A DNA stretch of 64,000 bases. It comes from Geosiphon pyriformis uo1 (Eukaryota; Fungi; Glomeromycota). A program made the translations under genes and the position numbers. The notes under the pieces were generated by a model, which had not been told where the DNA came from, searched no databases, and worked only from the letters and a program-made list of their open reading frames with translations. Where the stretch lies: NCBI GenBank assembly GCA_016748015.1, contig JAAOMT010000603.1, positions 415,532 to 479,531 on the forward strand, written 5' to 3'. How positions within the stretch are numbered: the stretch's first letter is position 1; each line of letters starts with the position of its first letter. Shown here one piece after another: positions 18,499 through 45,559 of this stretch.

Positions 18499-21400
18499 TT
18501 AAGTGTTTAAGTTTGATTGTTGTTCTATTATAATTATTGGTTCTAAATTTCGGGAAAAATCTTCAGGATTAATTAAAAGAGAATATGTACCAATTTGTGG
18601 AATTAATGGTTCAGGATTGTTACTGGAATGATAATGTTTCAATCTGTCTCTATGTGCAACTTTTGCTAATATTTTGTCATCAAGTCTTAACTTGTATGAT
18701 CTATTGCCTAGAATTTTGTGAATATAAAATGGTCCATCTCATTTATTTTCAAATTTCTCACTCTATTGTTTTTCAGCCTTAGTTCTGTGTAAGAAAACTT
18801 TATTTCCAACTTTAAATTCATTAGTAATAGGTGATAATTTGTTATCATGTCTTTCTTTTTGTTGAGCTTGGGAATGTTCAATATGAGTTGCTGCTATTCT
18901 TCTTTTTCCTTCCAGTATACTAAGAAGAGTGTAGGCTCTTCTTTGAAATGTTTTTTGAAAGTTTTCTTCATTGATTGGTTGTATTGGGTATGTTTCTACT
19001 ATAAAATTAATTGGTAATATTGCTGTCTTTCTATAAGTAAGATCAAATAATATGTGTTTTGTAGTATTTTGTTTTAGTGTTCTGTATGCTAGTAACACTG
19101 ATGAAATAAAGATATCCCATTCCTGCTCAAAATCTGTTGAGACTTTGGCTAAAGATTCACACAATGTTCTGTTGAAACGTTCTACAAGTCCATTTGTTTG
19201 AAGATGATAAGGTGATGATAAAGGTTTTTTGATATTGAATCATTCACAAATTTCTTGTATCAATTTGTTCACAAAATGTGTTCCTTGATTAGATAAAAGT
19301 TCAATTGGACATCCATGTTTACAAATAATGTCTTTATAGATGAAATTTGCTACTGATTTTGCATCTGCTCTTTGGATGGCTCTAGCTTCAGGCCATTTGA
19401 TAAGATAATTCACTGCAACTGCAATATAACGATTTTCTTGGGTTGTAATAGGTAATGGTCTGACTAAATCAATTCCAACTCTGTCAAAAGATTGTCCAAC
19501 TTTGATTGAATTTAAAGATTCTGTGGGGCAAGTTTTTTCTCTTCTTTGACAACTATTACAAGATTCTACATATTGTCAAATGTCTTTTTGCATGTGAGGC
19601 CAAAAATAATGTTCAAGGGTTCTTTGAATTGTTTTATCTCTTCCCAAGTGTGCTGAAGACAGATCTGTGTGCATGTTGTATAAAATTGTTTCTTTTTCAT
19701 TCTCTTGTACTAATCTGAGTGGTTGGTTTGGGTTTCTGTGATTTTTATAATAGATTTTGTTCTGGTGTATAAAATATTGTTTTGATTGGTATTGTAAACG
19801 ATGTTTTTCACTTGAAGACCAGTTTTTTGGCATGGTAAGAGTCTCCAAATAATTTTTAAGATTGCTGTAATTTCTGGGATCCATTCTTGTTTGGTTATTT
19901 TGTTGGTAGATTGGTAAGTTGTGGTGGAATTGTTGTTGGTATTAATCTTGTCTCATTCTTGAGAGGCTATCAACATTGGTATGTAGTTTTCCTGGTTTGT
20001 GGTGTACAATATATCTGTAGTCTGCTAGGAAGTTATTCCATTGAGACTGTTTGGCACTTTGTTCAGTTTTCTTTTTATTGAACTATTTGAGACCAATATT
20101 GTCTATTATTATGTCAAATTCTTTTCCATTCTTCAGATATTGTTGAAAATATTTAAGAGTCCAAATAACTGTGACAGCTTCTAATTTAGTTGAGCCGTAT
20201 TTTAGTTCTGTTGGTTTGAGTGTTCTACTAGCATAAGTGATGACTTGTTCTTGCCCATTTTTATCTACTTGTGATAAGATGGCACCAAATGCTATGTGTG
20301 AAACATTAGTAGCTAGTTGAAATTGTTTGTTGAAGTCTGGGTAAACAAGAACTGGGGCTGTTGTCAGCTTTGTTTTGAGGGTTTCAAATGCTTTTTGTTG
20401 TTCTTCAGTCTATTTGTATGGCACATTTTTATTGGTGAGATAATTGAGTGGTTTGGCAATTTCTGAGAATCCTTTGATGAATTTTTGATAATAGGAGACT
20501 AATCCTACAAATCCTCGTAGCTCTGTGGTATTTTTTGGGATTTGGAAGTTTTTGATAGCACTAATTGTTCCAGAGTTTGGTTTGACTCTATCTTTGCTAA
20601 CAATATGTCCAAAAAAAATTAAGCTTGTTTTTCCAAAGTAATATTTCTCAATATTTAACTTCAATTCTGCTTTCTGTAATCATTGAAAAACTTCTTGCAG
20701 ATGAATAAGATAGGCTTCAAAGCTTGGTGAGTACACATCAATATCATCAAGATAAACAACTACTGATTGCCATAAGAGTCCTTCATATACAACATTCATG
20801 AGTCATTGGAATGTTACTAGTGCATTGCAGAGTCCAAAAGACATAACATTGAACTTATAGTTTTCTCTTTGGGTGGTGAATACTGTTTTGGGTCGGTCTT
20901 TTGGGTCCATTTTGACTTGCCAGTATTCACTTTCCAAGTCTAAAGTTGAGAAGAACTTGGTTTTTCCTAGAGCATCTAGCATGTCATCAATTCTTGGAAA
21001 AAGATAAGCATCTCCAATTGTAACACTATTCAGTTGTCTATAATTAACACAAAATCTGATTTTTTCATTTTTCATTTTAACTAAAACTACTGATGAGGCC
21101 CAAGGACTTCTTGATAGTTGAATCAATCCGTTATTGAGCATTCTTTGGACCTTTTCTCTGATAAATTGGTGGCTGGCAAGTGGCACTTGATAGGCTTGTT
21201 GATGTTTTGGTGGAGCATCTTCTGTATGAATCTGATGTTGAACAATGTCTGTTTTTCCCAAGTTATTGTTGTCTTTTGCAAATATATCTGCAAATTCAGC
21301 TATCAATTGTTTCAATTGTCTTTGTTGTTGAGGTTCTAAGGGACCCATGTTGATTCGAGAGAGTTTTTCTTCCAAAAAGTAGTAGTTTTCAGTAGTGGGA

Positions 21401-24400
21401 ATGATATTTGGATTTGAAAGTAGAGTGTGCCTTATAATTTCGATGAAATTAGAGACAATTTGAGGGTTTTCATCTTGAAAAATATTGCTGTGTATGATTC
21501 CAATCTCTAGTTTGTTTAATAAAACAATAGGGTAATTATTGGGGTTATAGAATATAACTCAAAATTTTTTTATTCCTTTGGGAATATAAACGTTTGGAAT
21601 TGAGATTTCATGCTTTAAACAGATTTGTTTATTGGATTCAAAGATTTGTTGTGTGGTGGTGGGTTTTGAGCAAGTATAAATTTTGTGATGTTCTCCAAAA
21701 AGTAAAATAGTAATTGGCTGGGAAAGTTGAAGAATTTGGTGAGATTCATTTTGTGTATTAAGAGCTATGTTTACTAGAACTGTAAATCATCCAGTTGAAC
21801 CAAAATCTTGAGTTCTTCTTTTACTTTTTCCCAATTGTTCTCTGTTGTTTACTGATTGTAATCCCGAAATGTTGATTAAGAGTAAGTAAATTGCTTGAGC
21901 AATTTTTTCAACATGTTCAATTTTGAATGGTTTGTCTGTCTCATTCTGTAACATGATAGTAATGTCTCCAGTGTATCCTGCATCTATAACTTCTTCTCTA
22001 ATATTGATTCCTTTGCTTGCCAATAATGATCTGGAGGCAATTTGAACCATTGCTTCTGGTGGAATTTCAAGAGCAATTTTGAGATTGATTTTTGTCAAGG
22101 ACTTTGGTTGGAGAACCAAAGTATTTTTTCCTGAGTATCTTAGGTTATATCCAGCATCAATTTTGTGTGCTTTTTCTGGTCTGATTCCTTGGCCATGGTT
22201 GTCAAAATATTTAAGTTGTAGAGGTGGTTGTTTTTCAAGAAAATAGATGGGTGCAGTTAGTAGTTTTTCTACTAGTTCAGATACTCCAAATTTGATTTCA
22301 TTTTCGTCATTCTCATCTGGCAGAAGAATGCTAAGAGCATAATATTCTAAACACCATTGGTCATCACAAAACATAACACATTCTTCACACAATTGAATGT
22401 TTATTTGCTCTAATCATTGAATTTGAGCTTTTTTGGTCAGATATGTGTGGCTTGCCATTTGGTGATAGGTTTCTACTTCATCTTCATAATCAAATCCAGC
22501 TAATTCTATGGTATACTCAATATATTCAGCTTCTTTCATTTGGCAGACATTTTTTTGGGTGGCTTCATTGATCAATGCCATTGCTAGATCAAAAATTATT
22601 TCAGCATCATGAGGGTAGTGGTAAAGTTTATTGAGAGCACTGTTGTATGCTGCATCAAATAGTGTTCCTCTTCTGACTTTTTCCGAAATTAATAGAGCAT
22701 ATTGACAGGTTTGATCACATACTCCTCTTCTCATTGCTACATCAATCCAATTGCATTCTTCTAGTAGCATTTTTCCACATGTAAGACAAGGAGTTTTGTC
22801 CCATTTTCCACTTCTCTTTGGAGATCCAAATTGTTCTCTATGACATGCCTTGCAGAAGTAACAAGTACGAGTTTCATATTCCTCTTCTGGGGAAATACAG
22901 GCTCCCATAGATAAAAGCTTTTTTTTGCAATCCTTGCATTTTAGTGGAATATATGGTGGTTTTTTTCGTGGTTCTGGTATAGAATATCTAACTTTCTTCT
23001 ATTTCCTTGATTCTTCAAAAATCTCTTGTTCTGTTTCCTCAGCCCAATTGGATGGTAATTCAAGAGCCATGTAGGTTTCAGTGAGTGGCATTTCCTTCTT
23101 TTCTTCAAATTCAGATACTGGAGCTTTTTCTGATTATTTGTTAAAGGTACTACAGATTGCAGGTACTATGGTATATTGTCCTTGGTATGAGATTTTAAGT
23201 TCTTGAGTTTCCCAGTTCAGGTTTGCATTGGCCTTGAGAAGCCAATCATTTCCAACTAGAGCTTGATATTGGGGTGCATTCATAACAAGAACTTTAACTG
23301 GAATGGTGATTCCATCAATTGTAAAGAGGAAGTCATCAATTTCTCCTACTGAAGTCTTCTTCATACCATTAGCTGTAACAATAACTGTTTGAGCTGGTCT
23401 GTCTACATTTTGTTTGAGTTGTTGCATCAGCTGGTAAATGATAATACTTCTAGCTGATCCACTATCTAAGATTAAGCAAATAGGTTTTTCTTCCACTGTA
23501 GCTTCTGTATACATAGCAGTAATTGCTTTCTGTTCATTAACTGTTGCATTACTAAGCAGAAATGGTGATTCATTTGCTTCAAATTCAAATGGAAATATAT
23601 CTGACAGATTGGCATTTTGGGCAATTTGAGCTGGTAGAATAGTGTGGTTGGAAGGGTTTGATCTTGGTGCTACAACTTCACTTTTAGAAAGTGCAGTTTG
23701 TTGAAAATCCGATTCCTCTGGTATTGTAAAATAACTGGATTGAGTGTGATAGTGATTGGGTCTTTGCTGACCAGAATTTCGGGGAACCAACTGGTTATTT
23801 GGATTGATTCTGTTGTGGTTACTCTGCAATTGATTTTGGGGTGTAAATTGGTTATGTTGAACCAATCTTCTTGTTGGTATTTGATATTGTTGAGTGGGTG
23901 GTATCTGATATGGCTGAATTGGTAAAGGTTGCTGATATTGTTGCTGCATTGGTTGTAGAGCTGGTGGATAGTAACTGTTTTGATTTTGTGGTCTTGGTGA
24001 ATAATAGGTTGGTGGTGGAGATTGGTAATAGAATTGTTGTGGTGAAGAGTAATGTTGATTACTCCTGTTTTGTTGGTCTCTTTGTAATTTCCTACAATCT
24101 TGTTTCCAGTGTCCTGGAATTCCACAATAATGACAATTTTGAGATTGGTTGTTGGATGGTGATCCAAAATTGTTTTGGTTGTATTGTTGTGGGGGTTGAT
24201 ATTTTTGTGGTTGTTGTTGCTGTTATTGTTGGTTTGTAAAGTAGCTTTCAACTTTTTTTGTGAGTTGGTCTATCTTCTCTTCAGCTGCTGAGCTGGTTTC
24301 TCTAATTGCAAGGTTTACAAGCTTAGTGTGATTTGCTTTTTCCATTGTCATTTCATAGTTCTTTGCATGTCTAATAGCAGTTGCTAAGTTTGCTGGAGCA

Positions 24401-25565
24401 TGTGGACAGACTTTCTTAATCAGTTTGTCTTTTAACCCTGCTATAAACTGATTCAGAATTTGAGCATCAGAATAGTAGTCATTGGTTTCTAATTGTTGAA
24501 TTCGTCTGAAAAGTTTGTTAAATCTTCCAAGATAGGTCATAACAGTTTCAGATGTTTCTTGTTTGATATTGCAAAAGCGGTTTCTAAGAGTGATAGAGGT
24601 ATTGTTGTCAGTGAATTGTTGTAGAAAAGCATCTTTGAATGCTTGCCAGTTTTCAAATGGTTCTTCTAAATTTTCAAACCATTCTCCTGCTGTTTCTTGG
24701 AGAAAGTAGGGAATTGCTTTAAGCATTTTTGCTGCAATCCAACCATTTGCATCTTCTGCTTTTTGAACTTTGTCAAGCCATTCTTGAGAACTGGTATCAT
24801 CATCTTTACCAATGAATTCTGGGATTTTGCAATGTAAGCAGTTGTCATTTCTTTTTCATTTTCTGTAATTTCTTTTGGTTTTGATTCAGTTTCTTCACTT
24901 TCCAAGCTTTCTGAATAATTACTTTTGTTTTCCTGTAAGTAATCAATGATATTGGCACTTGTTGATATTAGTTTTTGCTGTTGAATAGGGTTTCTAGGTG
25001 ACTGAAAATCTTCTGGTCTGGAGAAGCAGTTGAGTGGTGAATTTGGTGTTTGTAGTTGAACAAGTGAAATTGGGAATGGTGTAATAGAAAGTGGTAATTT
25101 GACACTAGTTTTTTGTTCAAGTGTTTGCAAGTGTTTGGCAGATGTCTTTTGTAGTGTTGGAGTGTTTGAAATGGTTCTTGAGTATTGCTTTAATCTTTGT
25201 TTGCCTTTGTTGCTTGTTTTTGTCTCTGATTCAAAGTCAAAAGAGTATTTAGACTGTACTGGGTATTTTTCTTCACAATACTCAATAATGTTAAAATTAA
25301 GTTCTTGAAAGTAGGTAGCAAGTGTTTCACTGTTCAGGTCTTCTGTTCCCAATTGTGAATAGTGCACTAAATTATTGTAGAGGTTGCTTCTAACTTCTGA
25401 AATGTTGTAGTTTCCAAAAAGATAATTGTTAATGCAGTTTTCAATGTATTGGTATACTGATTTCTTGACAACTTCAATTCCGTCTGGAATGTTGAATCTT
25501 TGCTTGCAGTGGATGTAAATTGACTGGTAATACTCTAGAGTTGCTGTCTCTGGTGTGGTCGCCAC
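18499..25565 (-). pseudogene. gag-pol polyprotein, disrupted by in-frame stops and one frameshift near 24830
   Basis: Retrotrans gag (AGEWFE...WQAFKDAFLQQF), CCHC knuckle CHYCGIPGHWKQDC, protease LILDSGS, RT (LDLESEYWQV, YLDD), RNase H, integrase H2C2/core and GPFY motif. ORF pieces starting at 24726, 23949, 22908, 22392, 21375, 20664, 19884 and 19164 are all in one frame. Confidence 0.93.
21787..22200 (-). pseudogene. dUTPase domain inside the gypsy pol (between protease and RT)
   Basis: All five dUTPase motifs are recognisable: DAGYNL, IASRS, VIDAGYTGDI, KIAQAI, RRTQDFGSTG. Confidence 0.9.
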
Positions 25566-30414: not shown

Positions 30415-32382
30415 ATGACAATAAATCCAGTAGGCTCTTCTGCTGGTGGGTCAGCATCTGGTTTGGCTGGTGTGGGGACCTGTTCTGGTAATAAAAAAAA
30501 GGCGTGCGTTGAGAGTGTTTACGCTCATGGTCCGTCTTACAAGAAAGTGAAGAAACCTGATGATTTTGGTGTTGTTGTGGATTCATCGGCTGGCTCTCTG
30601 CCTGTAAACATGCTACATGGTAGCATTGATGACTGGAAGAAATCTTGGGGTAGTGAAATGGACAGTGAGGAATCAAGTATTGGCAGGACTTCTGACGTTG
30701 AGAACATGAAGAACACAATTGTGGAAGAAACGAGCTACGTCAATTCCGATGCTTCCGGGGATGACAAACTAATGGGTAATGCTATGCCAAAGGGTTTGAG
30801 AACAAGAATGTATGTATTTGATCACCTGCCTAAGCAGCCTTCTTTCGTTGATGTGAGTGGTACTGATGATGTTTTGGAGCTCCCTTCTTGCACATTCTAT
30901 GGATCCAATCAGTTACTGCCAGTCGCGTTACATGATCGGGAGATTTGGAATTTTATTTCAGTGAAATCTTTTGCATTGGATATTGAACTTTCTGCTGTTT
31001 CTGGGAAAACTGTTAGTGATAAGTTGATTTGTGTAAAAAAGATTTTTTATCAAGTTGATGGTTTTGGGGGGGGGCTTTGACTTCCTTAAAATTTTCTGGA
31101 ATAATAAGGTCATCATTTACATCTGAAAAAAGTTTGATTAAGGCAAGGGAAATGGCAATCAGTAAAAAAATTTTGGTAAATGATGATCTAAGAAAAATAA
31201 ACAGCCATTCAGATTGGGAGGTGATCGCCAAGGAAATCCCAGTAGATCTTCCCAAATCAGCGATTGAGGCAGTATTCTTCAAGTTTGGCAAGATTATTTC
31301 AATTAAAGTACAGCTTATTGGTCTTTGGCAAAAAGTCCTAGTGGAATATAAATCATCTGAAATAGCTGATTTGGTCACGGTTAGATGGTCTGTGCTCATG
31401 GGAAAAGATTCTGTTTGCGTGGCAAAGGCGTGTGTTGATAAACAAACGTGGGTATCTAGGGATCAGCATTGGGTGTTGTTTTACACTCTTTCAGTTGGCA
31501 CGACTGCTCATGATTTGTCTGAATTGGTGAAGGCTTATGGTGGGAAAACTTGTTTTATAGGCCATAATCCAACTTCATATGTTCGTGATCAGTGTGCTGT
31601 GATTTGTTTTGAAAGTGAGGCATCCAAGTTGGCTGCTATTGGTTCGGTTCCAGTTTTCAAAGATGTGGGCTTGTGTTGGGCTGGTCTTTCTTTGGCCAGT
31701 TGTGCTCATTGCAAACTGTTTGGTCATATTGCTGTTGATTGCTCTGTGGGTAGGGGGTCTGGGGGTTGTGGGAAATGTGCGGCGACTTCTTAGAATAGGG
31801 TACGGTTGGCCAATATTTATAGGAAGAAGCAGGCACCGATTGTCCGCCCAGTTTCTTTTGGTGGAAAGACATGGGCCCAAGTGGCAGGCAGCTCTCCCTC
31901 TTGTGTTGTCTCTTCAAGTGCTCCTGGTGTTGGTTCAATCTCTGGTTCGAAGGCTTTCTCAATGGATTCCTCCTCATTTGGTGCTGCTGATCTAGGTGGT
32001 CGCCTAACTGTGCTGGAACACTCCATGGAAATTCTCTCGGACCAAGTGTCACTCATTTTAAAGAAATTAAGTTTTCATTGACTTGGTGTCATTGGCACCC
32101 TCTCCCTCAGCTCTTCCTTTGGTATCTCCAACTGCCGTTGTTTCAGATATAGACTCAGGTTTGGCTTTGGATAGTACGTTGTTATCATCTGCCTCTTTTC
32201 CTCCCAATGTTGGTGAGTTAATTGTTGATTTCAGTCCGAGCAGTTCTAGGGTTTTGACTGCCAAGATTGGTGGTTTGGAGTCGAATATGGTGGCTCTTAA
32301 GGCTTCAGTTCACTCAGTTTTGGATAGATTGGATTATCTGCATTCTGGATCGGGTTCGTTGGCTTTTCCTTCATCTCAATGA
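30415..32382 (+). pseudogene. LINE ORF1 (RRM-like region and CCHC knuckle CAHCKLFGHIAVDC)
   Basis: ORFs 30415, 31077, 31806 and 32083 joined across a frameshift in the G9 run (31066-31074) and premature stops. Confidence 0.85.
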
Positions 32383-35300
32383 GTGGTTTGGTTTGGAAAT
32401 TTGCTGCGTGCAACATTCAGGGTATCAATGTTTCTATGAAGCAAGATGTTGTTCATTGGCATGTGAACTTGGGGAATATGGTTTCTTTCATCACTGAGAC
32501 TAAGTTGAGGTCCTCTTCTGGGCCATGGATAAAGGACAAATTTGATGGAGTGCGAATATTTTTTTCTGGCTTGGATAAAGGTTTTATGGGTGCTGGAGTT
32601 GCAATTGTTATAAACGTTTCTTTGGCCTGTCATGTATCTAAGGTGGAAGAAATTCCTGGTCAGATTATTTCTGTTTGGCTCCTGTTTAAGGACAAGCTCT
32701 TGGTTACTGTTTTGGAGTTGTATGCTGGTGCCTCTTCTGGAGCTAGATTTGGTCAGGCTTCTGAAGTTAACTCTCTCATTGCAAAGGCAGTCAACTCCAG
32801 CAATTTTGTTATCTTGGGTGGGGACTTTAATGAGAATGAATCTGGTAGAAGTGCTAGTTTCAAGTTTTGTTTGAGTTTGGGTTTGGTCAATTCATTTGTT
32901 GGTTATCATTTGGCTAATTTTTATATGTGGAGCAATTCGAGAGGAGTTGGGAAAACGATTGATTACATTTTTGTTGGTGGTAATTTGTCTTCTGCTATTG
33001 CTGGTTATTAAGTTGTCTCTGTTTTGGATTTCTTTGACACCGATCACAAAGCAGTTGTGGTTTCAGTTGGTTTGGGTGGGCTTCTAGATGTACAATTGAA
33101 TAGTTTGTGCAAGCAGGTGAATAAAGATTGTTGGAAGTTCAAAATCAAGAATGCTGACTGTGTTGGATGGGCTAAGTTTAAGGATCTCTCGTCAGCTAGA
33201 CTTTTGTCTTTGGGTGAGGTGTTCTTTGGTACCGAAATACGTGGTAATGTGGATACAATGTGGGCAGTTTTGGTGGGGGCTGTAGTAGATTCTGCTGATG
33301 TGACATTTTCAAGGCTTTGGTTTAGTGAATTCAAGTGTTCAAGAAACAAACATTCTTCTAGGTTTTTTGGTCTGAAATTGTTGGTGGCCAAGATTGTCAA
33401 AAAATTTTGCTCTGGTGACTTACTGGGTGCTGATTGTCTTGTGAGTAAATAGTCAACTTTGAATAATGTAAAGGCTCATGTTTTCAAGGACTTGGTGGGC
33501 TCAGGTGTTAAATTTGATGTTGTTGTTAGGCATTTGTCATTGGTTCGCAGAGATTACAAGAGATCGAAGATGTTTGAATCAAGGTTGGCTGAGAAAGCTT
33601 CAGTTAAGAAGGCGATTGAAAAGCGCATGGATAATTTCTGTTTGGATAAGGGTAGTATGATCAGGAGTATGTTGGAAAAGCCTTTTTGCAAGGTCGTGCT
33701 GGATCACTTAATAGTTGACAATGATCTGGTTTTGTTGTCTGAAGAGGTGAAGTCCAGTGTGGATAGAATAATGGAGGGGTGGACGAGGAAACGCTCCGTG
33801 CAGTTAGTGCTTCCTGGTCTTTGGGCTCGTCAGTACGCGCCTTTGGACTATGTTCGGGATGATGCTTTTTCAGGTGTTATGAGTGCTATCAGTATGGGCA
33901 AATTACTCTCTGTTGTTGGTGGTCTTCCTGATGACAAGACTGCTGGTTTGTCTGGTGTTCCTAATGAGTTGTGAAAACATGGTGGTGAGGTGGTTTTGGG
34001 GTGCCTGTTGGCACTGTTTAATAAATGTTTGTCTGTTGGTGTGGTGCCTGTTTTGTGGAAGAGGGTTTGGGTGTCAATGATTCCTAAGCCTTATGACTGG
34101 GATGGAGTTCTTATGAACACTCGGCCCATTGTTTTGATTGAGACAGCCAGGAAGATTCTTTCTAAGATTCTGTCTGATCGTATTTCAATGGCTTGTAGCA
34201 AGTTTAATGTTCTTCAGGGTGACAACTTTTCGGTGCTGAAGGGTACGTCTACCCAATCTCTGGTGTTTGCTGTCAGATCGGTGATTGAGGATGCCATTGA
34301 GAAAGATAGGGAGTTATGGTTGGTCTTACAAGATATGCGGAAAGCTTACAATTCAGTTGGGTGGCACCATTTAAGAGCTAGTTTGCGGCATGTCAAGATG
34401 TGTGAGAGATTCATAAGGTTTTTTGGTGGTATTCATGAGGATAGAGTTAATAGGGTGATGACTGACTTTGGTTTGTCTGGTGGTTATAAGGTGTATGATG
34501 GGCTGGATCAGGATGAGGTCTTTTTGCTGCTTCTTTGGAGAATTTTTTATGATCTGTTTTTGTGTGAGGTTAAGAGGCACGAACAATTGTGTGGGTACTG
34601 GATTGATACTAAGTTTGTTTCAAAATCTGGCAGAATTGAGAGCGGTGGCGGTTTGACATCATATTTTTTGGCTGGTGCATTTGTTAATGATACAATCTGG
34701 GTTGGAAATTGTCAAGCTTCTACTCAATATGCTCTGAACATTACCAGTGAATTTTTTGTGATCAATGATATTTCTATCAATAGTGAAAAGACGGTAGCTA
34801 TTCCCATCAATCAGGGCGTTAAAGTTGCTTCACTAAACATTTGTGGTCAGCCAATTTCTATTGCTAAGAAAGGAGAAGCACATTGGTATCTGGGTATTTT
34901 TCTGTCAACTGAAAGGCTCTCCAAGCCGAGTGTTGCTAAGGCTCATGTGGATGTACGTTTCTTCGTCAATGTTGTGCTTAGGAAGGATATTACAGACAAA
35001 CAGTTCTCCTATCTGGTGTCGGCTGTTTTGCAGCCTATTGTTGCCTATCGTATTCAGTTCAGTTTTGTCTCATTTAATGTTTGTCGCAAGTGGGATGTCT
35101 TGGTTAGAAAGGATCTTAGGTCCAAGGCTTGTCTCCCTCATGATTTTCCAGATGCTGCTTTACATCATTCCTCATTGTATGGCCTAAAGCCTTTTGAGCA
35201 GGTGCAGTCAGAAGGGAAGATTGCTGCTTTGATGGTGTTCTCTAATGCCTATGGTATTCTTGGGCATTTGTTTAGACATAGGTTTTTGGACCTTCAGATT

Positions 35301-37060
35301 CTTAGTTGGGCTCCTTTGGATCTTTTGCAGTTTCTGGTCAGGTTGCGTGTTAGTCCGGTGAACAATTTTTTGGCTGGGATAGTAAAAATCTTTCTGGACA
35401 ATGAGCTTGCTTTGGTGAACAACCTTCCCACTGTATTTCGTAGTCCTGGTCAGTTTCTGTTGTCCTCTGTTCTTGGAAAGTCTCTGTATTTTGATTTGGT
35501 CAAATCTTTTAAACGTTTTGGTGTCACTTTTGGTGATCAGTTTTTTGATAAGAAGGGCGTTTTGTTGGATTGGAAAACTTTTCATCGTTGGAAAAGGTTG
35601 GATCCGTGTGGCCCTGTGTCTCACTGGTTCATGGTTTCTTCTGAGTTTTTGAAGGGTCAGGGTTACTCATTTTCTGGTTCTATTGGCTATGCGGAAAAGC
35701 TTGGTTTGAACATTTTGGGGTCTGAGGAATTTTCTGTGGTAAAAGATAGGATGCATGACGTTTGGTCGGGCTTTTTTGAAGTTTTTACGGATGGGTCTTT
35801 GAAGAATGCAGGCTCTGCTGAAGTTGCCTGTGGTGCTGTTGCATACTTTCCAGTCTTGAATAAAAGCATTGGTGTTGCTGTTCGTGGCCTTTTGTCATCT
35901 ACTTTGGCCGAGTTACAGGCTGTTGCTTTGGCTTTGGAGTGTGTTCCTTCTTCTAGTACTGTGGTGTTACGTCTTAACAGCCAGGCTGCCATTGATGCAT
36001 GTGTATCTGAGATGTCCTTGGTTGCCCCTGATTTCCATAATCAATGCTGGCTGGAAAGGCGTCATATTTTCAATTTGGTCAGGGATAAGGATCTTAGCAT
36101 GAGTTGGGTTAAGGTGAAAGGACACTCTGGGATTCCTGATAATGTAAAAGCTGACTTGGCTGCTGAGGCTGCCTCTGGGTCTCCCTTTTCTCTTTGTGCC
36201 GATGTGCATGAACATTTTTTGGTTGCTGAGGGTATTGCTGTTTCTGGTAATGCCCGTCATTTTGTCAGGAATATTTTTCAATCAATTTGTTGTGCTCGTT
36301 GGGAAGCTGGGCCTGGTTGTGACGTGGTTCCGAATGCGATAATTGGTTGCATAAACTGGGTTGTCACAGCAGAGGTGTGACATCCTGATTCTCATATGCT
36401 TGCTGGGTTCACTAGCTGCGCATCCTCAATGCTTCACACTTATGTTATGAAGGCTGTACACAGGAGGTTGCCAGTGGCGGTAAGGAAGAGGTTGTATGAT
36501 AAGTGCTATCCTAGTGTACTGTGTTTGTTTTGTGGCGAGGTGAAGTTCTCTGACCACGCTTTTACTTGTGTTCATGAGTCTGGCGTTCGTGATGAGATTT
36601 TGGCAGAGGCTTCTGCCCGTTGGTCAGCTTTGGCTGGTGGTTCCCCTGCTTCTGCCATGTTGTGAGTTTTGTCTCAATGTTCTATTGATGTTGGGCTGTA
36701 CACTTTGGTGTGCAAAAGGTTTGTGCTGGAGAGTGGTATGAGGAGGCTTGCAGTGTTTTTGAGGATAGAAAGATGGCCGCTGCTCGGATTGTTGATTTTG
36801 TCAGGTTTGTTGTTGGGTTATATCATGCTAAAGTATGGTTGGCTAGGGCCAGCCACCAGGTGGTGATGGAGAAGGCTGGTCTGGTTTGTGACGTTGGTGT
36901 TGTTTCTGGGCTTCCTTGTGGTATGTCTTCGGTTTTGTCTGATGGTGTTGTGAGATTGCTTGGTGTGGCCAATTCCTTTGCTGTTAGCTTTGGTCATTGG
37001 AAGCCTTATTGTTTCTTTTCTGGTCTGGGTAGCAGTGTGCAGGTAATTATAGATGTGTAG
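32379..37060 (+). pseudogene. LINE ORF2: APE endonuclease - RT - RNase H - CCHC
   Basis: ACNIQG/ITETK/LGGDFN/IDYIF/TDH (APE); IPKP, RPIVL, QDMRKAYN, AFVNDT (RT, DD->ND); VFTDGS, AELQAV, VKGHSG (RNase H); CLFC...H...C. Same frame with five premature stops and a frameshift near 36733. Confidence 0.92.
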
Positions 37061-40541: not shown

Positions 40542-41507
40542 GACTATTTTTCTTAAAAATTAAGATTAAAAACTTTAATTTATTTTACATTTTTTTTTCG
40601 AATAAATTAATATTCGCATTTTTTGATTGTGAATATACTATAATATAGATTATAACTGTAATAATTCACTTTAAAGAAAATATATATATTTGCAATATCA
40701 GATTTTTTTATATTAAATTATATTATTATTTATAAATGTTTTTTAATTATTTGTTATATAATAACATTTATCTAATTAAATATTTTTAATTTAATTAACA
40801 AAAATTTTATAAATATATATATATATCTTTATCTATAACTATATAATTTATATGATATAAATATAATTATAATAATTATATAATAATAGTTTTTTTTATA
40901 TTTATTTTAATTGATATTTGTTAATTGTATAAAATTACAATTTTGTATTTTAATAAAAAGTTAAATAATTTGACTAATTTATATTGCAATTAATTTCCTA
41001 ATTTATCATTTTATTATTAAAAAAAATTTGTATTCAGCTTTTATCATTTTTTATCCTGAATTTGGGTAATTTATAATAACTTTATTGAATAACAAAATAT
41101 CCTCATTACAATTAATATAGCTTTTAACGAAAAACATTAGGTTTTCATTTTGCCATATCACTTTCAAGACATTTTGCGTATAATTTTTTCTATGAAATAA
41201 ATCTCTGAACCTTTTTTTTCCTAATATGGCTAAGACTATTTATGTTGACAGTGTTACAAATTCAACATTCCCTTTTTCGTGACCTTTCTTGGTTTGAGAT
41301 TTTGATTGACATGACCTATCAGAAAAATTTATAAATTTGCCAACCTCTTAGTTCTTATAAATTCTAATATTATTATTATTTCAAGGTGTAAACAAACAAA
41401 AAAAGATAAATAAGAGGTGTATTAGAGAAAACGGAGAGAATTTAACAATCTTTTATCAGGTTGTAGTAAGAGTCCTTATCGCAGAAGGTTAGAGTAGTAA
41501 CCCTTGT

Positions 41508-42462
41508 TTAAATCTGAGAAAATTAGAAAATTGAATATATTCATAAATTTTAATGAAATTGATTTAATTCATGGTATACGATATTAAGTTGAACAAAAAA
41601 CTTTTTATACGTACATCATCAATGTCAAACTCGAAAGGACAGTCTTCTTCTTCAGGATTGAATGTATCTGTTTCATTAATTTTGGCTTTGGGTGTACCAG
41701 CAAGTTTGTCAGCTTTTTGTTTGATTACAATTTCAAAAAAGCAAAATTTAAATAAAACATCACACACCATTTTCTGGTAATTCGCCATACGTTTTCAAAT
41801 TTCGGGCCTCTTCGGTTGTGTATTTTAGGATAACATCAGCTTTAGCGTCTTGATAATCACGCAGTGAAATAAGAATGATATCCCCTTGGTTGATCCAAAC
41901 CTTTTTTTGAAAATAATAATAATTGGAACTTGAGGACATTTGGATGATAAAGAATTATAAAACCATCCGAATAAAAAATTTGCAGACCTTTTTCCGCAGT
42001 TTACCACGAATATGTGCTAATCGCTTCTCGCCATCAAAACATTGAGCTTCTAACCGACCATTTCCAAGCATTTTTACTACTTGTGCATATTCTGGATTAT
42101 GAATTCAACCACATTGATATTTATGGAATTTGGAAGGATAGAATAATAACGCAGAAAGAATATCGATCCGAATGCAGAATATATAATAGTTGAAAATATT
42201 AAAGAAATTTTAAGATGAGTAATTCTTAAGAAATTTAATAGTTCTCGATACCTAGATACTGAAGGAAATATATAAAACCGCAGTACCTTGGCCATCTTCT
42301 TTGAAAATTAGTTCTCTCTTTTCAGATTCATTTTCATTCTTTCCTCTTCTTCGGTTTTTACCTCCCTGTCAAAATTTTCCCAAGAATGATAGCGATAAGC
42401 AACTTAATGTAAATGGTCAACTTTCCTTTGAAGATGTATACCTTTCCTTTGTTCTTTGGCAT
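41508..42462 (-). CDS. TIF11: Eukaryotic translation initiation factor 1A; exons ~42462-42442, 42365-42287, 42091-41988, 41900-41768, 41685-41615, 41513-41508
   Basis: Spliced: [121 protein letters not shown]...FEFDIDDI*. Confidence 0.97.
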
Positions 42463-42753
42463 AGTTGTTTTATTTGAAGTTTAAGCTAAAAACTTTTTTG
42501 ATCACAAAAAAACTCTTTACACTTTAGCCTTGCTAATTTCAAAGGAAGAGATTTTTATTGAGAGTTGAAAAGTAATTAACAAGTTTTCTTTTGTCTTTAT
42601 TGGACAGAGGTCGGGAGCCAAGATTTCTAAGCTTGCTTTACCACTGATGAAAAAGATTTGCTTAATAATGCCTATCAAGTGATGCTGATCTGGTTCAAAA
42701 TCGCGAAAATAAATATCTCACGCTTTTCCTCTTTCCATAGCTAACTTCTTAAA

Positions 42754-42882
42754 ATGCTGACACCCACCACCTCTGCTATCAAGAAATACCTCTATGTCCA
42801 TATCTCTAGTGCAAAGCAAAGAGAGGATCTTGAGTTACAAAACAACTTCTCGTCCGATTCCCTACATATATGCATAAAATAA
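42754..42882 (+). pseudogene. tnpA: IS607 TnpA serine recombinase remnant
   Basis: KKYLYVHISSAKQREDLELQ matches the IS607/resolvase catalytic motif Y-A-R-V-S-S-x-K-Q-K-D-D-L-E-R-Q. The rest is deleted or frameshifted. Confidence 0.75.
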
Positions 42883-42919
42883 AGGTTAACTCAGAATTGG
42901 TTAATGCCTTTAAGCTAAC

Positions 42920-44712
42920 GACGACGAGGAGCAATCATAGAATACAGCAAGAGATTTGTCAGAAGGGAAAAAGAGAAACTCAGGATTACCCTCAATGCCA
43001 CAAAGCCAATCGTCACGAAGGATATTTTTGAAACGGCATCTTCAAAAGTTATTCCCTGGTTGAAGTCTCTCAAGAGTATTGTTGCCGTAAACTTCTCAGA
43101 TATGCATGCGGCAGATGAAGACTGTGTTGATGGCACGCGTACTTTTGATTTTCTTTCGTCGCTTGTAGCGATCCATGTAACTCGTTTGCGATAAAGACAA
43201 TTCGTGGGTAAATATATCGACATGGTAATGATTCTCCCACAGGGAAGCAGAGCTTTTCCCTACTGAATAGAACGCAGGAACAAAAAAGCGCAAGAGAAAG
43301 GTAACAGTAGCCCGTGGCAAACGCCAGAAGACGGAAGGCATGCTCAACCACACGTTACTAGCCAAGATCTATCAATTCTTCAGAACGGAACAAATCTACA
43401 TGCCACCTTCTACCTAAACTTGCTGTGAGGACTTTGCATCACCGACACAGCACGTCGACAGGTCTTGAAAATGGTATCCTTGCAGCACGCTCACTTGGAC
43501 TTTTTCCCCAGAGGATAACAAGTAATTATTCAAAACGGAACAAATATACCTGTCACCAACCACACTCAGAAGCGGTTATTGAAGCGATGGATGAGCTTGG
43601 CAAGATTTGCCTTTATTACTGTGGTGAGATGAACCAAAAGATGTCGCATCATTATGATATCACGGAAAAAAGATGGTTAAACCCTATGACGTTTCAACCA
43701 AAACGTCTCCTTTTTGATGATGTTTCCGGTATCTGGTGTGAAAGAAAATTTTGCAGAGCTATGGTCCGTCTTGGCATGCTCTTAAGAGGCTGTTTAGGCT
43801 CAGCTCCTGCTAACATCGCAGACAAAGCGATTGATCAGGGCGAAAGGAAGTTATTAAACGTAATGCACAGCGACAACAAGGCGCATCAACGCATCATCTT
43901 TCTTTTCAATCTCTGAATTTTGCCAAATTATCTTGAATCGCTTCCAGCAATATATGTATATGCACATCGATACAAGGTAAAGATCATAAATTTTTGTTTA
44001 AATTGTTATATACCATCATTTATATCGTCTTTATGCCATTTTTTATCTTTATTTTTAAGAATAAACATGTACTATGGCCTCTCCACTTTGAAAAAATAAC
44101 AAGTGGTCCAATCCGCACAAGATCACATGTTATAGCAAGCTCACTTACTATCGCAAAACTAATGAATGAAAGTTTGCCTGGGTATATGAGACGCAAAAAC
44201 ACCTTCACGAAACTCAAGCGGATGGCTCTGTTCATGCAGTCTCCATAGATCCTGACATTCGCACTTCATTTACATGGTATTCCCCAACAAAAGGCGCAGG
44301 CAAAATAGGCTCTTGTGACATTAGTCGTATTGTTTGCCTCTGCAAATTTATGGATGAGCTTTGCTCAAAGATAAATTAAATAACTCTTCAAAACGTAAGA
44401 AAGCTAAAGCCAGAATATTAGAAAAAGCGATTGGGTGCATCCATCAAAAAGTTTATCGGACATGGTGAATCGAAAAATCACCCGAAAAAAGTTAAAATAT
44501 GCTATGCTGGGGGCACTATCGATTTCGTCAACGTCTGATCACCAAGGCTGAGGAATTAGAACCAAGCTTACATATCTAAGACTTGTAGTCAACGTGGCAA
44601 CATCCAAAGAATCGAAGGGCTCAAAATGTACAACTGCCGGAATTGTAAGCTTGCTGTGGATAGAACTCTTGGTCCTACAGTGACCATGCAGGACATGATA
44701 GGCGTTATATAG
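42920..44712 (+). pseudogene. Fanzor2 / IS607 TnpB-like RNA-guided endonuclease pseudogene with a candidate intron (43977-44059)
   Basis: KKRKRK...LAKIY (43283-43372); APANIADKAID helix; RuvC-I AVSIDPDIRTSFTWYSP (D at 44248) followed by GKIGSCDISRIVCLCKFMDELCSK; SDMV..RKIT; MLCWGHYRFRQRLITKAEE (44499-44555); NQAYISKTCSQRG...YNCRNCKLAVDR (44560-44664). Confidence 0.88.
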
Positions 44713-45559
44713 CAGTGATTATTTTTCAATTATTTTATTATTATTGAAACTAATAATAATAATGTGGCGCTGCTGTTTTTGTTTTAAATCTAAAATAAAA
44801 ACAATTTTACAATTCAATAATAACCTAAAAAATAACCAAGTTATCAACAAATTTGTAATTAATTTTAATATCTGTAAATAAATTTAATTTTAATGATATA
44901 ATTATTATAAAAATATGGTGCAGGCACTCTAAAGACATCAAATATTACACCACCGCTGAAATTCTCGATGCATGTATTACGTAGTATACTGGGGGTGGTT
45001 ATTTTATTAATAAAATAATAAACCACATGATTACTATATAATAAATCATGTGCAAATGAAATGCGTTGCGCGTTCATATAATCTATTAGGGAACAATTTT
45101 AAATTACTTTATTTTAAGAGTGACTCTTAAACTTATTTAAGAGACTCTCAGGCTTTCCCTTTTCTATATAAGAGCGTGTCTGGAAGGCCGCTTGCCTAAT
45201 AACCCTGTTCTTCCCACAATATACTTTAGCATTTCATAATGTCTTTTTTTTTCAAAAAAAAGCAAAAACAAAACGTTTGTTGGTTTAATGTGTTTTTTTT
45301 ATAATTAAAAACCCGTTGTTTCCATTGAGAGTGTATTTTTTATCAAAGATCCTTTTAGATTACACATTTTTTATTATGTCAAAACGAAAAAGCAAAATAA
45401 ATACTGTTCTAAATGCTCTATTTACTATTGGTTTTTATTTAAAGTGTCTACAGAAAAAATCTAAATTTCTAAGACATTTTTTATAAAAAATGCATTAGTT
45501 TATGGATCTTATTAAAGACTATTTAATAATGCATTTATTATTATTATTATTATTATTAT

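Follow-up and report, generated by a model that had tools for sequence, protein, structure and literature searches.

An IS607/Fanzor2 element in Geosiphon pyriformis

The window analyzed here is a stretch of 64,000 nt from the genome of Geosiphon pyriformis uo1 (Glomeromycota; assembly GCA_016748015.1, contig JAAOMT010000603.1, positions 415,532 to 479,531 of the forward strand), and positions are counted from its first nucleotide. Beside a divergent host gene for eIF1A lies, at 42647 to ~44721 on the plus strand, a decayed copy of an IS607/Fanzor2 element (Table 1). Such elements pair a serine recombinase, TnpA, with Fanzor2, a eukaryotic RNA-guided nuclease of the TnpB kind. IS607-encoded Fanzor2 is a known type (PMC3627910). 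The window element is one of well over 100 broken copies in the Geosiphon genome.

A preliminary description had identified the element by recombinase, RuvC and zinc-ribbon motifs. Six-frame translation placed every one of them where it had been reported, all on the plus strand between 42793 and 44664 and spread across three frames by stops and frameshifts. Isolated pieces of the window give weak family scores (PF12323, E 0.031; PF07282, E 8e-4; NF033518, the IS607 transposase model, E 0.027). The TnpA proteins of relatives score 155–159 bits against NF033518 (cut-off 110). A chance match is nevertheless excluded, because tblastn alignments of the window to intact relatives are colinear (e.g., 50% identity over 95 aa to P0011, E 6e-24) and a profile of 51 other genomic copies matches 43556–44738 with 1150 bits.

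That the nuclease is closer to Fanzor2 than to Fanzor1, as first proposed, is borne out by the intact relative P0277. Its best sequence match in the PDB is ApmFz2, the Fanzor2 of Acanthamoeba polyphaga mimivirus (E 3.5e-24), with no Fanzor1 at E<=1, and in a fold search ApmFz2 ranks first (TM-score 0.60) and SpuFz1 40th (0.34). The traits of Fanzor2*, namely capture by a transposon with terminal inverted repeats and target site duplications and absence of TnpA, were not found; there is instead a TnpA remnant with IS607-type ends.

The window copy is dead, as had been claimed. It has no intact D-E-D triad, as the RuvC-II glutamate has become glutamine, RuvC-III is deleted and stops are numerous. 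In the TnpA motif the serine is retained and the arginine lost. Further lesions include deletions near 44450, 44557 and 44665 and truncation of the right end near 44721, and both strands of a GAUGGA/UCCAUC pairing typical of the family (see below) are gone. Features not covered by the preliminary description are the left end, the deletion of the TnpA start and helix-turn-helix (HTH), the scrambled segment, the 182-nt insertion, the intron and the truncated right end. An 83-nt part of that insertion matches, at 82%, a site ~100 kb away on the same contig (G000:C675:358500).

Table 1. Features of the IS607/Fanzor2 copy and its flank in the window.
Feature	Position	Strand	Evidence or remark
Host eIF1A gene, divergent from element	41400..42622	-	PF01176 above cut-off; five GT-AG introns spliced in contigs of two RNA-like runs
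Left junction triplet CTG, read as decayed CCG (putative target motif)	42644..42646	+	CCG or CTG ahead of left end in several copies; CCG in L328, L248, L082
Left end with subterminal ~19-nt repeat (42660–42678)	42647..42730	+	Putative TnpA binding site
Junction of family-shared ~135-nt deletion (TnpA start codon and winged-helix domain gone)	42728..42736	+	Anchor distances
Fanzor2 start codon (42754) and overlapping TnpA catalytic motif	42754..42870	+	YARVSS decayed to YVHISS
Motif starts YVHISS, SIDPD, GKIG, DISRI	42793, 44242, 44299, 44317	+	
Scrambled TnpA middle	42871..43239	+	Without match elsewhere in genome search; inverted TnpA C-terminus piece at 43103–43148
TnpA tail and end of Fanzor2 N-terminal extension	43240..43373	+	103 bits against family profile
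182-nt insertion, private to window copy	43374..43555	+	No match to family profile
Fanzor2 HTH/REC region, frameshifted	43556..43976	+	PF12323 weak; tblastn to P0011
83-nt AT-rich GT-AG phase-0 insertion, subfamily-specific	43977..44059	+	Most likely a spliceosomal intron; copy comparison
Fanzor2 WED and RuvC-I, then ~85-nt deletion	44060..44453	+	Catalytic Asp 44248 retained; DPG changed to DPD
RuvC-II and zinc ribbon	44499..44664	+	Glu-to-Gln at 44563; ~45-nt deletion after 44664 took RuvC-III Asp
Motif starts MLCWGH (different frame), NQAYIS, CSQR, CRNC, VDR	44499, 44560, 44584, 44635, 44656	+	
Remnant of putative omegaRNA scaffold	44668..44721	+	Final ~40 nt with terminal CCATCCG lost

The eIF1A gene and a possible role for the copy

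Neighbors of the element in the window are eIF1A, other intron-containing genes and retroelements. Viral genes, as expected of an endogenous giant-virus region, are absent among them. An assembled eIF1A transcript contig ends at 42622, 24 nt from the left end of the element and in divergent orientation, so an upstream core promoter would sit in element DNA. It is on this ground that the copy might have been co-opted as part of the eIF1A promoter. However, contigs do not reveal true transcript starts, this copy shows no unusual conservation of its left-end region, and with more than 100 copies in the genome some will land near genes; such co-option is thus considered unlikely. A scan for sigma-70 promoters, a bacterial model that does not apply to a fungal host, gave no match. 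Low-depth contigs of an RNA-like run are identical to parts of the element, and may reflect either weak transcription or carry-over of DNA. A high-depth contig of 2.6 kb (run X3) carries the TnpA-tail piece 43103–43135 near its end; it may represent a host transcript whose untranslated region includes a remnant of the element.

Copies of the family in the Geosiphon genome

The searched genome comprises 128.3 Mb in 792 contigs, and the genome-wide match counts are lower bounds: at least 148 for a RuvC-I profile, at least 147 for the TnpA catalytic region and at least 68 for the zinc ribbon PF07282. The copies are dispersed on many large contigs amid fungal genes and repeats, and their unrelated flanks and fixed ends agree with the earlier proposal that the element was once mobile in this lineage. 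Core identity among 30 fetched DNA copies is 64–82%, and members of the window subfamily deviate by 9–26% from the column majority. No intact Geosiphon copy was found; of the RuvC-I matches only the best candidates were scored, and among these the longest open frame has 234 aa. C-to-T and G-to-A changes are ~3 times as common as the reverse. Decay specific to CpG was considered and rejected, with a C-to-T rate of 0.17 at CpG and 0.15 elsewhere.

Could the element be a product of contamination or misassembly? The link to eIF1A, on which the preliminary description made its placement in the genome depend, is spanned by a single 2.8-kb contig of a DNA run (41400–43338, zero differences). The run may be the source of the assembly, so this sole bridge is in agreement but not independent. 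Against such an artifact stand the many large contigs on which copies sit among fungal genes and repeats, the C-to-T and G-to-A decay spectrum, and an intron-like insertion in one subfamily, which together leave it a negligible probability.

Catalytic residues prevail in the family. Counting only copies that cover the respective site, the triad is retained as Asp in 29 of 35, Glu in 29 of 36 and Asp in 22 of 29; the family master was, therefore, most likely a working nuclease. The majority also has DPG in RuvC-I and a glutamate close before the zinc finger, the signature that defines Fanzor2 and pro-Fanzors (10.1101/2023.08.09.552727), in place of the DPD and glutamine of the window copy. Other domains of these proteins are present as well, including HTH_OrfB_IS605, a C4 zinc ribbon and an N-terminal extension, whose frame is seen in copy L061. 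The claim of a TnpA recombinase holds through the YxRVS remnant in the window, through copies L061–L063, which pass PF00239, and through the relatives that pass NF033518. A profile search had as its best match a Geosiphon protein, KAG9304279.1. Over 132 aa this protein and copy L002 are 100% identical, which assigns the genome to G. pyriformis or a very close strain.

The family appears to have diversified into at least three subfamilies in Geosiphon before dying out in this genome. A second, more distant Fanzor2 family of Geosiphon (L031, L033, L034 and L046; e.g., G000:C701:385626) forms a separate branch of the tree described below. Its members have an AT-rich interruption directly after the RuvC-I motif, which may be another intron.

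Ends, target motif and right-end RNA

Alignment of the copies, as had been suggested, defined the ends and pointed to a target-adjacent motif (TAM). Right ends stop abruptly at CAATCCATCCG, beyond which the flanks are unrelated, and 17 of 31 close in CCG, with most of the others one change away. A 26-nt pattern of this end has 37 genomic matches and none in the control. The CAATCCATCCG terminus recurs in Diversispora and in one virus-like contig. Left ends are preceded by CCG or CTG in Geosiphon copies, and by CCG in the intact relatives L328, L248 and L082. Terminal inverted repeats and variable target duplications are absent, the same short core occurs at both junctions, and the subterminal ~19-nt repeat of the left end aligns in direct orientation to the right-end stem of complete copies, in keeping with the subterminal direct repeats of IS607. 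IS607 exchanges a short core upon insertion and leaves no duplication (PMC6188088). CCG at both junctions fits this kind of insertion and predicts a 5′-CCG TAM, which is the likely motif of the family.

The last ~150 nt of the element can be folded into hairpins in which compensatory changes clearly exceed both controls. Three hairpins of the right-end RNA covary. Sixteen of 35 pairs have changed on both sides, a value reached in 0 of 500 shuffles, although the relatedness of the sequences can inflate the count. This structured end is the putative omegaRNA, or guide RNA, of the family. The GAUGGA/UCCAUC pairing near the right end is nearly invariant and lies in coding sequence, without support from covariation; it could be a pseudoknot of the TnpB type.

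Nested TnpA and a shared deletion of its head

In intact relatives, the two genes are nested. For instance, TnpA of L328 is a protein of 258 aa that begins 114 nt inside the left end and has a MerR-type HTH and a Resolvase domain, both above cut-off. The Fanzor2 frame of L328 is open over 654 codons, starts inside TnpA and overlaps it for 205 codons in another frame. Overlaps of >100 codons occur in 19 of 22 viral and 8 of 15 bacterial pro-Fanzor loci (range 100–240 codons; L088–L246). As the overlap is widespread in viral and bacterial relatives, nesting is a trait of the clade and not specific to Geosiphon.

What is new in Geosiphon is that the multiplied copies share a loss of ~135 nt containing the TnpA start codon and DNA-binding domain. 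Compared with L328, the same segment is missing from the window copy and from L006, L008, L023 and L029, and the distance between anchors on either side is 29–38 nt in these five and 165–169 nt in two intact relatives. The N-terminal winged helix typical of IS607 TnpA, kept in L328, L248 and L082, is absent from the window and the copies examined, and no HTH match occurs in any fetched Geosiphon copy. Genome-wide, nine matches to the HTH stand against at least 147 to the catalytic region; two of the nine are strong and immediately precede a catalytic match. These two loci, G000:C673:54631–55151 and C692:1462705–1463116, are decayed TnpA copies that keep the HTH beside the catalytic domain, and are candidate helper elements.

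Because the head deletion is shared and HTH matches are far fewer than catalytic ones, the master was probably non-autonomous: the amplified form would have made Fanzor2 but no usable TnpA, and would have relied on rarer complete elements. The pairing with TnpA in the preliminary description stands as far as the remnant goes, but this TnpA was probably already non-functional when the family multiplied. Conversely, the family may have been autonomous, with each copy losing its winged HTH separately after insertion. Private deletions are abundant in the copies, and at least two decayed ones retain the HTH, as separate losses would allow. Independent deletions would not share breakpoints, yet the window, L006, L008, L023 and L029 have an identical junction, and L007, L010, L013, L063 and L070 show the same sequence context, so that separate loss is improbable.

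An intron-like insertion

Copies of the window subfamily carry, at one fixed site and in phase 0, an AT-rich segment of 47–101 nt (83 nt in the window). In 13 of 17 copies the segment opens with GT directly behind the same codon of the exon, and AG closes it in most. Its GC content is 12–24%, against ~40% in the flanks, its size and base content resemble those of the eIF1A introns, and upon its removal the frame matches that of relatives. At this site, a short stretch of coding sequence is found instead in two further Geosiphon subfamilies and in every intact relative checked. Gain of introns by Fanzors is known in general (PMC10530073), and this segment is most likely a spliceosomal intron gained by the window subfamily. 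It could otherwise be AT-rich DNA inserted into a master whose Fanzor was by then no longer functional, as the variable length might suggest and as would fit the absence of a GT-AG joint at 43977–44059 in two RNA-like runs. With the fixed GT, the mostly AG ends, the low GC content, the likeness to eIF1A introns and the restored frame, and with the catalytic residues being the majority state family-wide, this alternative has a low probability.

Relatives and origin

Homologues of the element occur in Diversispora, Cetraspora and Gigaspora, and on many metagenome contigs about the size of an element. In a maximum-likelihood tree of the RuvC region (101 rows), the window copy groups with four other intron-bearing copies (support 100/99), inside a clade of Glomeromycota and soil or metagenome rows (100/96) whose sister group (100/99) includes P0153, P0154 and P0005. 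P0153 lies within a complete IS607 adjoining genes above cut-off for the minor capsid protein P11_C of nucleocytoplasmic large DNA viruses and for DUF5901, while the P0154 contig is gene-dense and encodes an RNA ligase and an AAA protein. Searching plasmids and viral contigs with single fragments gave no match. Searches with P0153 against IMG/VR and with P0277 against bacterial genomes found no close relative, and profile scans gave distant ones only.

Geosiphon harbors Nostoc, and one may ask whether the element came directly from this endosymbiont. Pro-Fanzors are mainly cyanobacterial (10.1101/2023.08.09.552727), and a TnpB of Nostoc PCC 7120 is 37% identical to a clade member. However, relatives exist in Diversispora, Cetraspora and Gigaspora, fungi without such a symbiont. 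The window copy is 51–66% identical to Diversispora, Cetraspora, Gigaspora and soil rows and 29% to the Nostoc protein, and none of the 101 rows that falls inside the Glomeromycota/soil clade is labeled bacterial. A direct Nostoc origin is accordingly very improbable. A topology forcing the clade together with Nostoc and Microcoleus was rejected (approximately unbiased test, p=0.00015). The earlier suggestion of a prokaryote- or virus-derived system thus narrows to the virus-associated side, with a direct cyanobacterial donor rejected. Arrival by a viral route is the best reading, not proven, and the odds are somewhat better than even that a giant virus brought the lineage into Glomeromycota in a single ancient event.

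Intact relatives, whose existence the preliminary description considered possible, were found outside the Geosiphon genome. L328:7169–9439 (ENA ERZ25039516 contig_60907) is an apparently intact, autonomous clade member in a metagenome. Its left flank has 22–35% GC and open reading frames without an assigned family, and its right flank has 40–53% GC and bacterial genes (FTCD, LpxK, Por secretion tail); the contig is either a chimera or a real insertion into a bacterium. In Diversispora epigaea, L084:6001–8144 and L085 have a Fanzor2 frame open through the N-terminal extension and an overlapping TnpA frame with several stops. Upstream, the flanks of the two loci agree over several hundred bases, and each locus contains an internal tandem duplication of its RuvC region; a larger repeat has possibly captured them.

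Comparison with known systems

The best match in sequence and fold, ApmFz2 of ISvMimi (PDB 9B0L; PMC11832414), shares with the family the layout of TnpA and Fanzor2, the N-terminal extension, the zinc ribbon, the right-end omegaRNA (putative in Geosiphon), and DPG with a C-terminally shifted glutamate. Structure-aligned identity is only 18%, and its TAM is GGG, in contrast to the CCG deduced here. ApmFz2 is viral and intact, whereas the Geosiphon family is nuclear, decayed and intron-bearing, with a headless TnpA. A 5′-CCG TAM has been measured for NlovFz2 of Naegleria lovaniensis (PMC10432273), the same as at the Geosiphon junctions; this likeness may be convergent. Bacterial pro-Fanzor IS607 TnpB proteins (Moorena, Microcoleus, Nostoc and others) likewise have DPG and the shifted glutamate, and many have a long TnpA/TnpB overlap, but they fall outside the Geosiphon clade, with 29–42% identity over the RuvC region. 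IS607/ISC1926 (PMC6188088) resembles the family in lacking inverted repeats, in having the same short core at both junctions and, as regards intact relatives, in the N-terminal DNA-binding domain of its serine recombinase. Its core is GG rather than CG/CCG, and the amplified Geosiphon form is without that domain and the start codon. Homologues in Glomeromycota (Diversispora Glove_40g20 and Glove_688g24, Cetraspora, Gigaspora), whose annotation reads hypothetical or transposase, are members of the Geosiphon clade and have the same right-end terminus. Those of Diversispora have no intron at the Geosiphon site, and their Fanzor frame is open whereas their TnpA frame has stops.

The pairing highlighted in the preliminary description is thus of the known IS607/Fanzor2 type and is not unprecedented in fungi. 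Fanzor2 is found broadly in fungi (PMC10432273), and IS607-like sequences are known from ascomycetes and one basidiomycete (PMC3673617). In the literature searched, no paper linking Fanzor or TnpB to Glomeromycota was found. IS607 elements of eukaryotes are sporadic and low-copy, with 1–22 per genome (PMC3673617), as opposed to the >100 relics of Geosiphon.

A proposed life cycle

The best explanation of the whole, with a probability of roughly 0.85, is that the window element is the fossil of a DNA transposon of the IS607 family which was non-autonomous and produced Fanzor2 and a guide RNA. By analogy with IS607, a rarer helper element would have supplied a full-length serine recombinase, which would have attached to the repeats at the ends, cut the element out and integrated it at CCG through exchange of a 2-bp core (PMC6188088). 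Fanzor2, guided by the right-end RNA and ~20 nt of flank, would have cut the empty, CCG-adjacent donor sites, as expected from the biology of TnpB, and cutting of vacated sites would have favored retention or restoration of the element. The TnpA stump may owe its survival to the fact that the same DNA, in another reading frame, encodes the N-terminal domain of the nuclease. The lineage would have diversified in Geosiphon, with one subfamily gaining an intron, and then died out there. None of these steps operates in the present window copy.

Several points weigh against this account. The head deletion is cleanly measured in five copies; ten more have the downstream anchor and no HTH match, with an upstream anchor too decayed. 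The HTH-bearing Geosiphon copies are candidate helpers only, and splicing of the intron was not seen in the two RNA-like runs. As for the origin, the virus-like contigs measure no more than 9 and 26 kb and are unclassified, and most clade rows have no known host. The tree contains no Fanzor1 and has no reliable root, for which reason the direction from virus to fungus is not shown. The Geosiphon rows contain X where broken frames were read through, and their masking relied on similarity to relatives, a treatment that can draw them toward those relatives.

A more tentative proposal, given rather less than even odds, is that an IS607/Fanzor2 borne by a giant virus settled in the nuclei of arbuscular mycorrhizal fungi as a transposon lineage and moved toward being a selfish element with the nuclease only. 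Its headless TnpA could not have been shed, as the DNA is shared with the nuclease, an intron would have been gained, and intact CCG-targeting relatives would still be active in soil Glomeromycota. If true, the family would document a stage between IS607 of the prokaryotic type and Fanzors adapted to eukaryotes, and it would also be a trace of giant-virus infection of these fungi.

The window copy itself does nothing, and the family matters modestly. The shared loss of the TnpA head and the gain of what is most likely an intron illustrate stepwise adaptation to life in a nucleus. Evidence of DNA exchange between giant viruses and these fungi (PMC10640383) is extended by the virus-like sister group. 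Natural intact relatives such as L328, P0277 and P0153, with a likely CCG TAM and a mapped putative omegaRNA, are candidate compact nucleases for genome editing.

Other elements in the window

Two retroelements are recognizable elsewhere in the window. On the minus strand, 18763–25565 contains frames like those of a Ty3/Gypsy retroelement, including one at 21787–22392 that was recognized by eye as dUTPase-like. A long interspersed nuclear element (LINE)-like element with endonuclease, reverse transcriptase and RNase H-like frames occupies 30415–37060, and its observed/expected CpG ratio is 0.39, compared with 0.88 in the IS607 copies.

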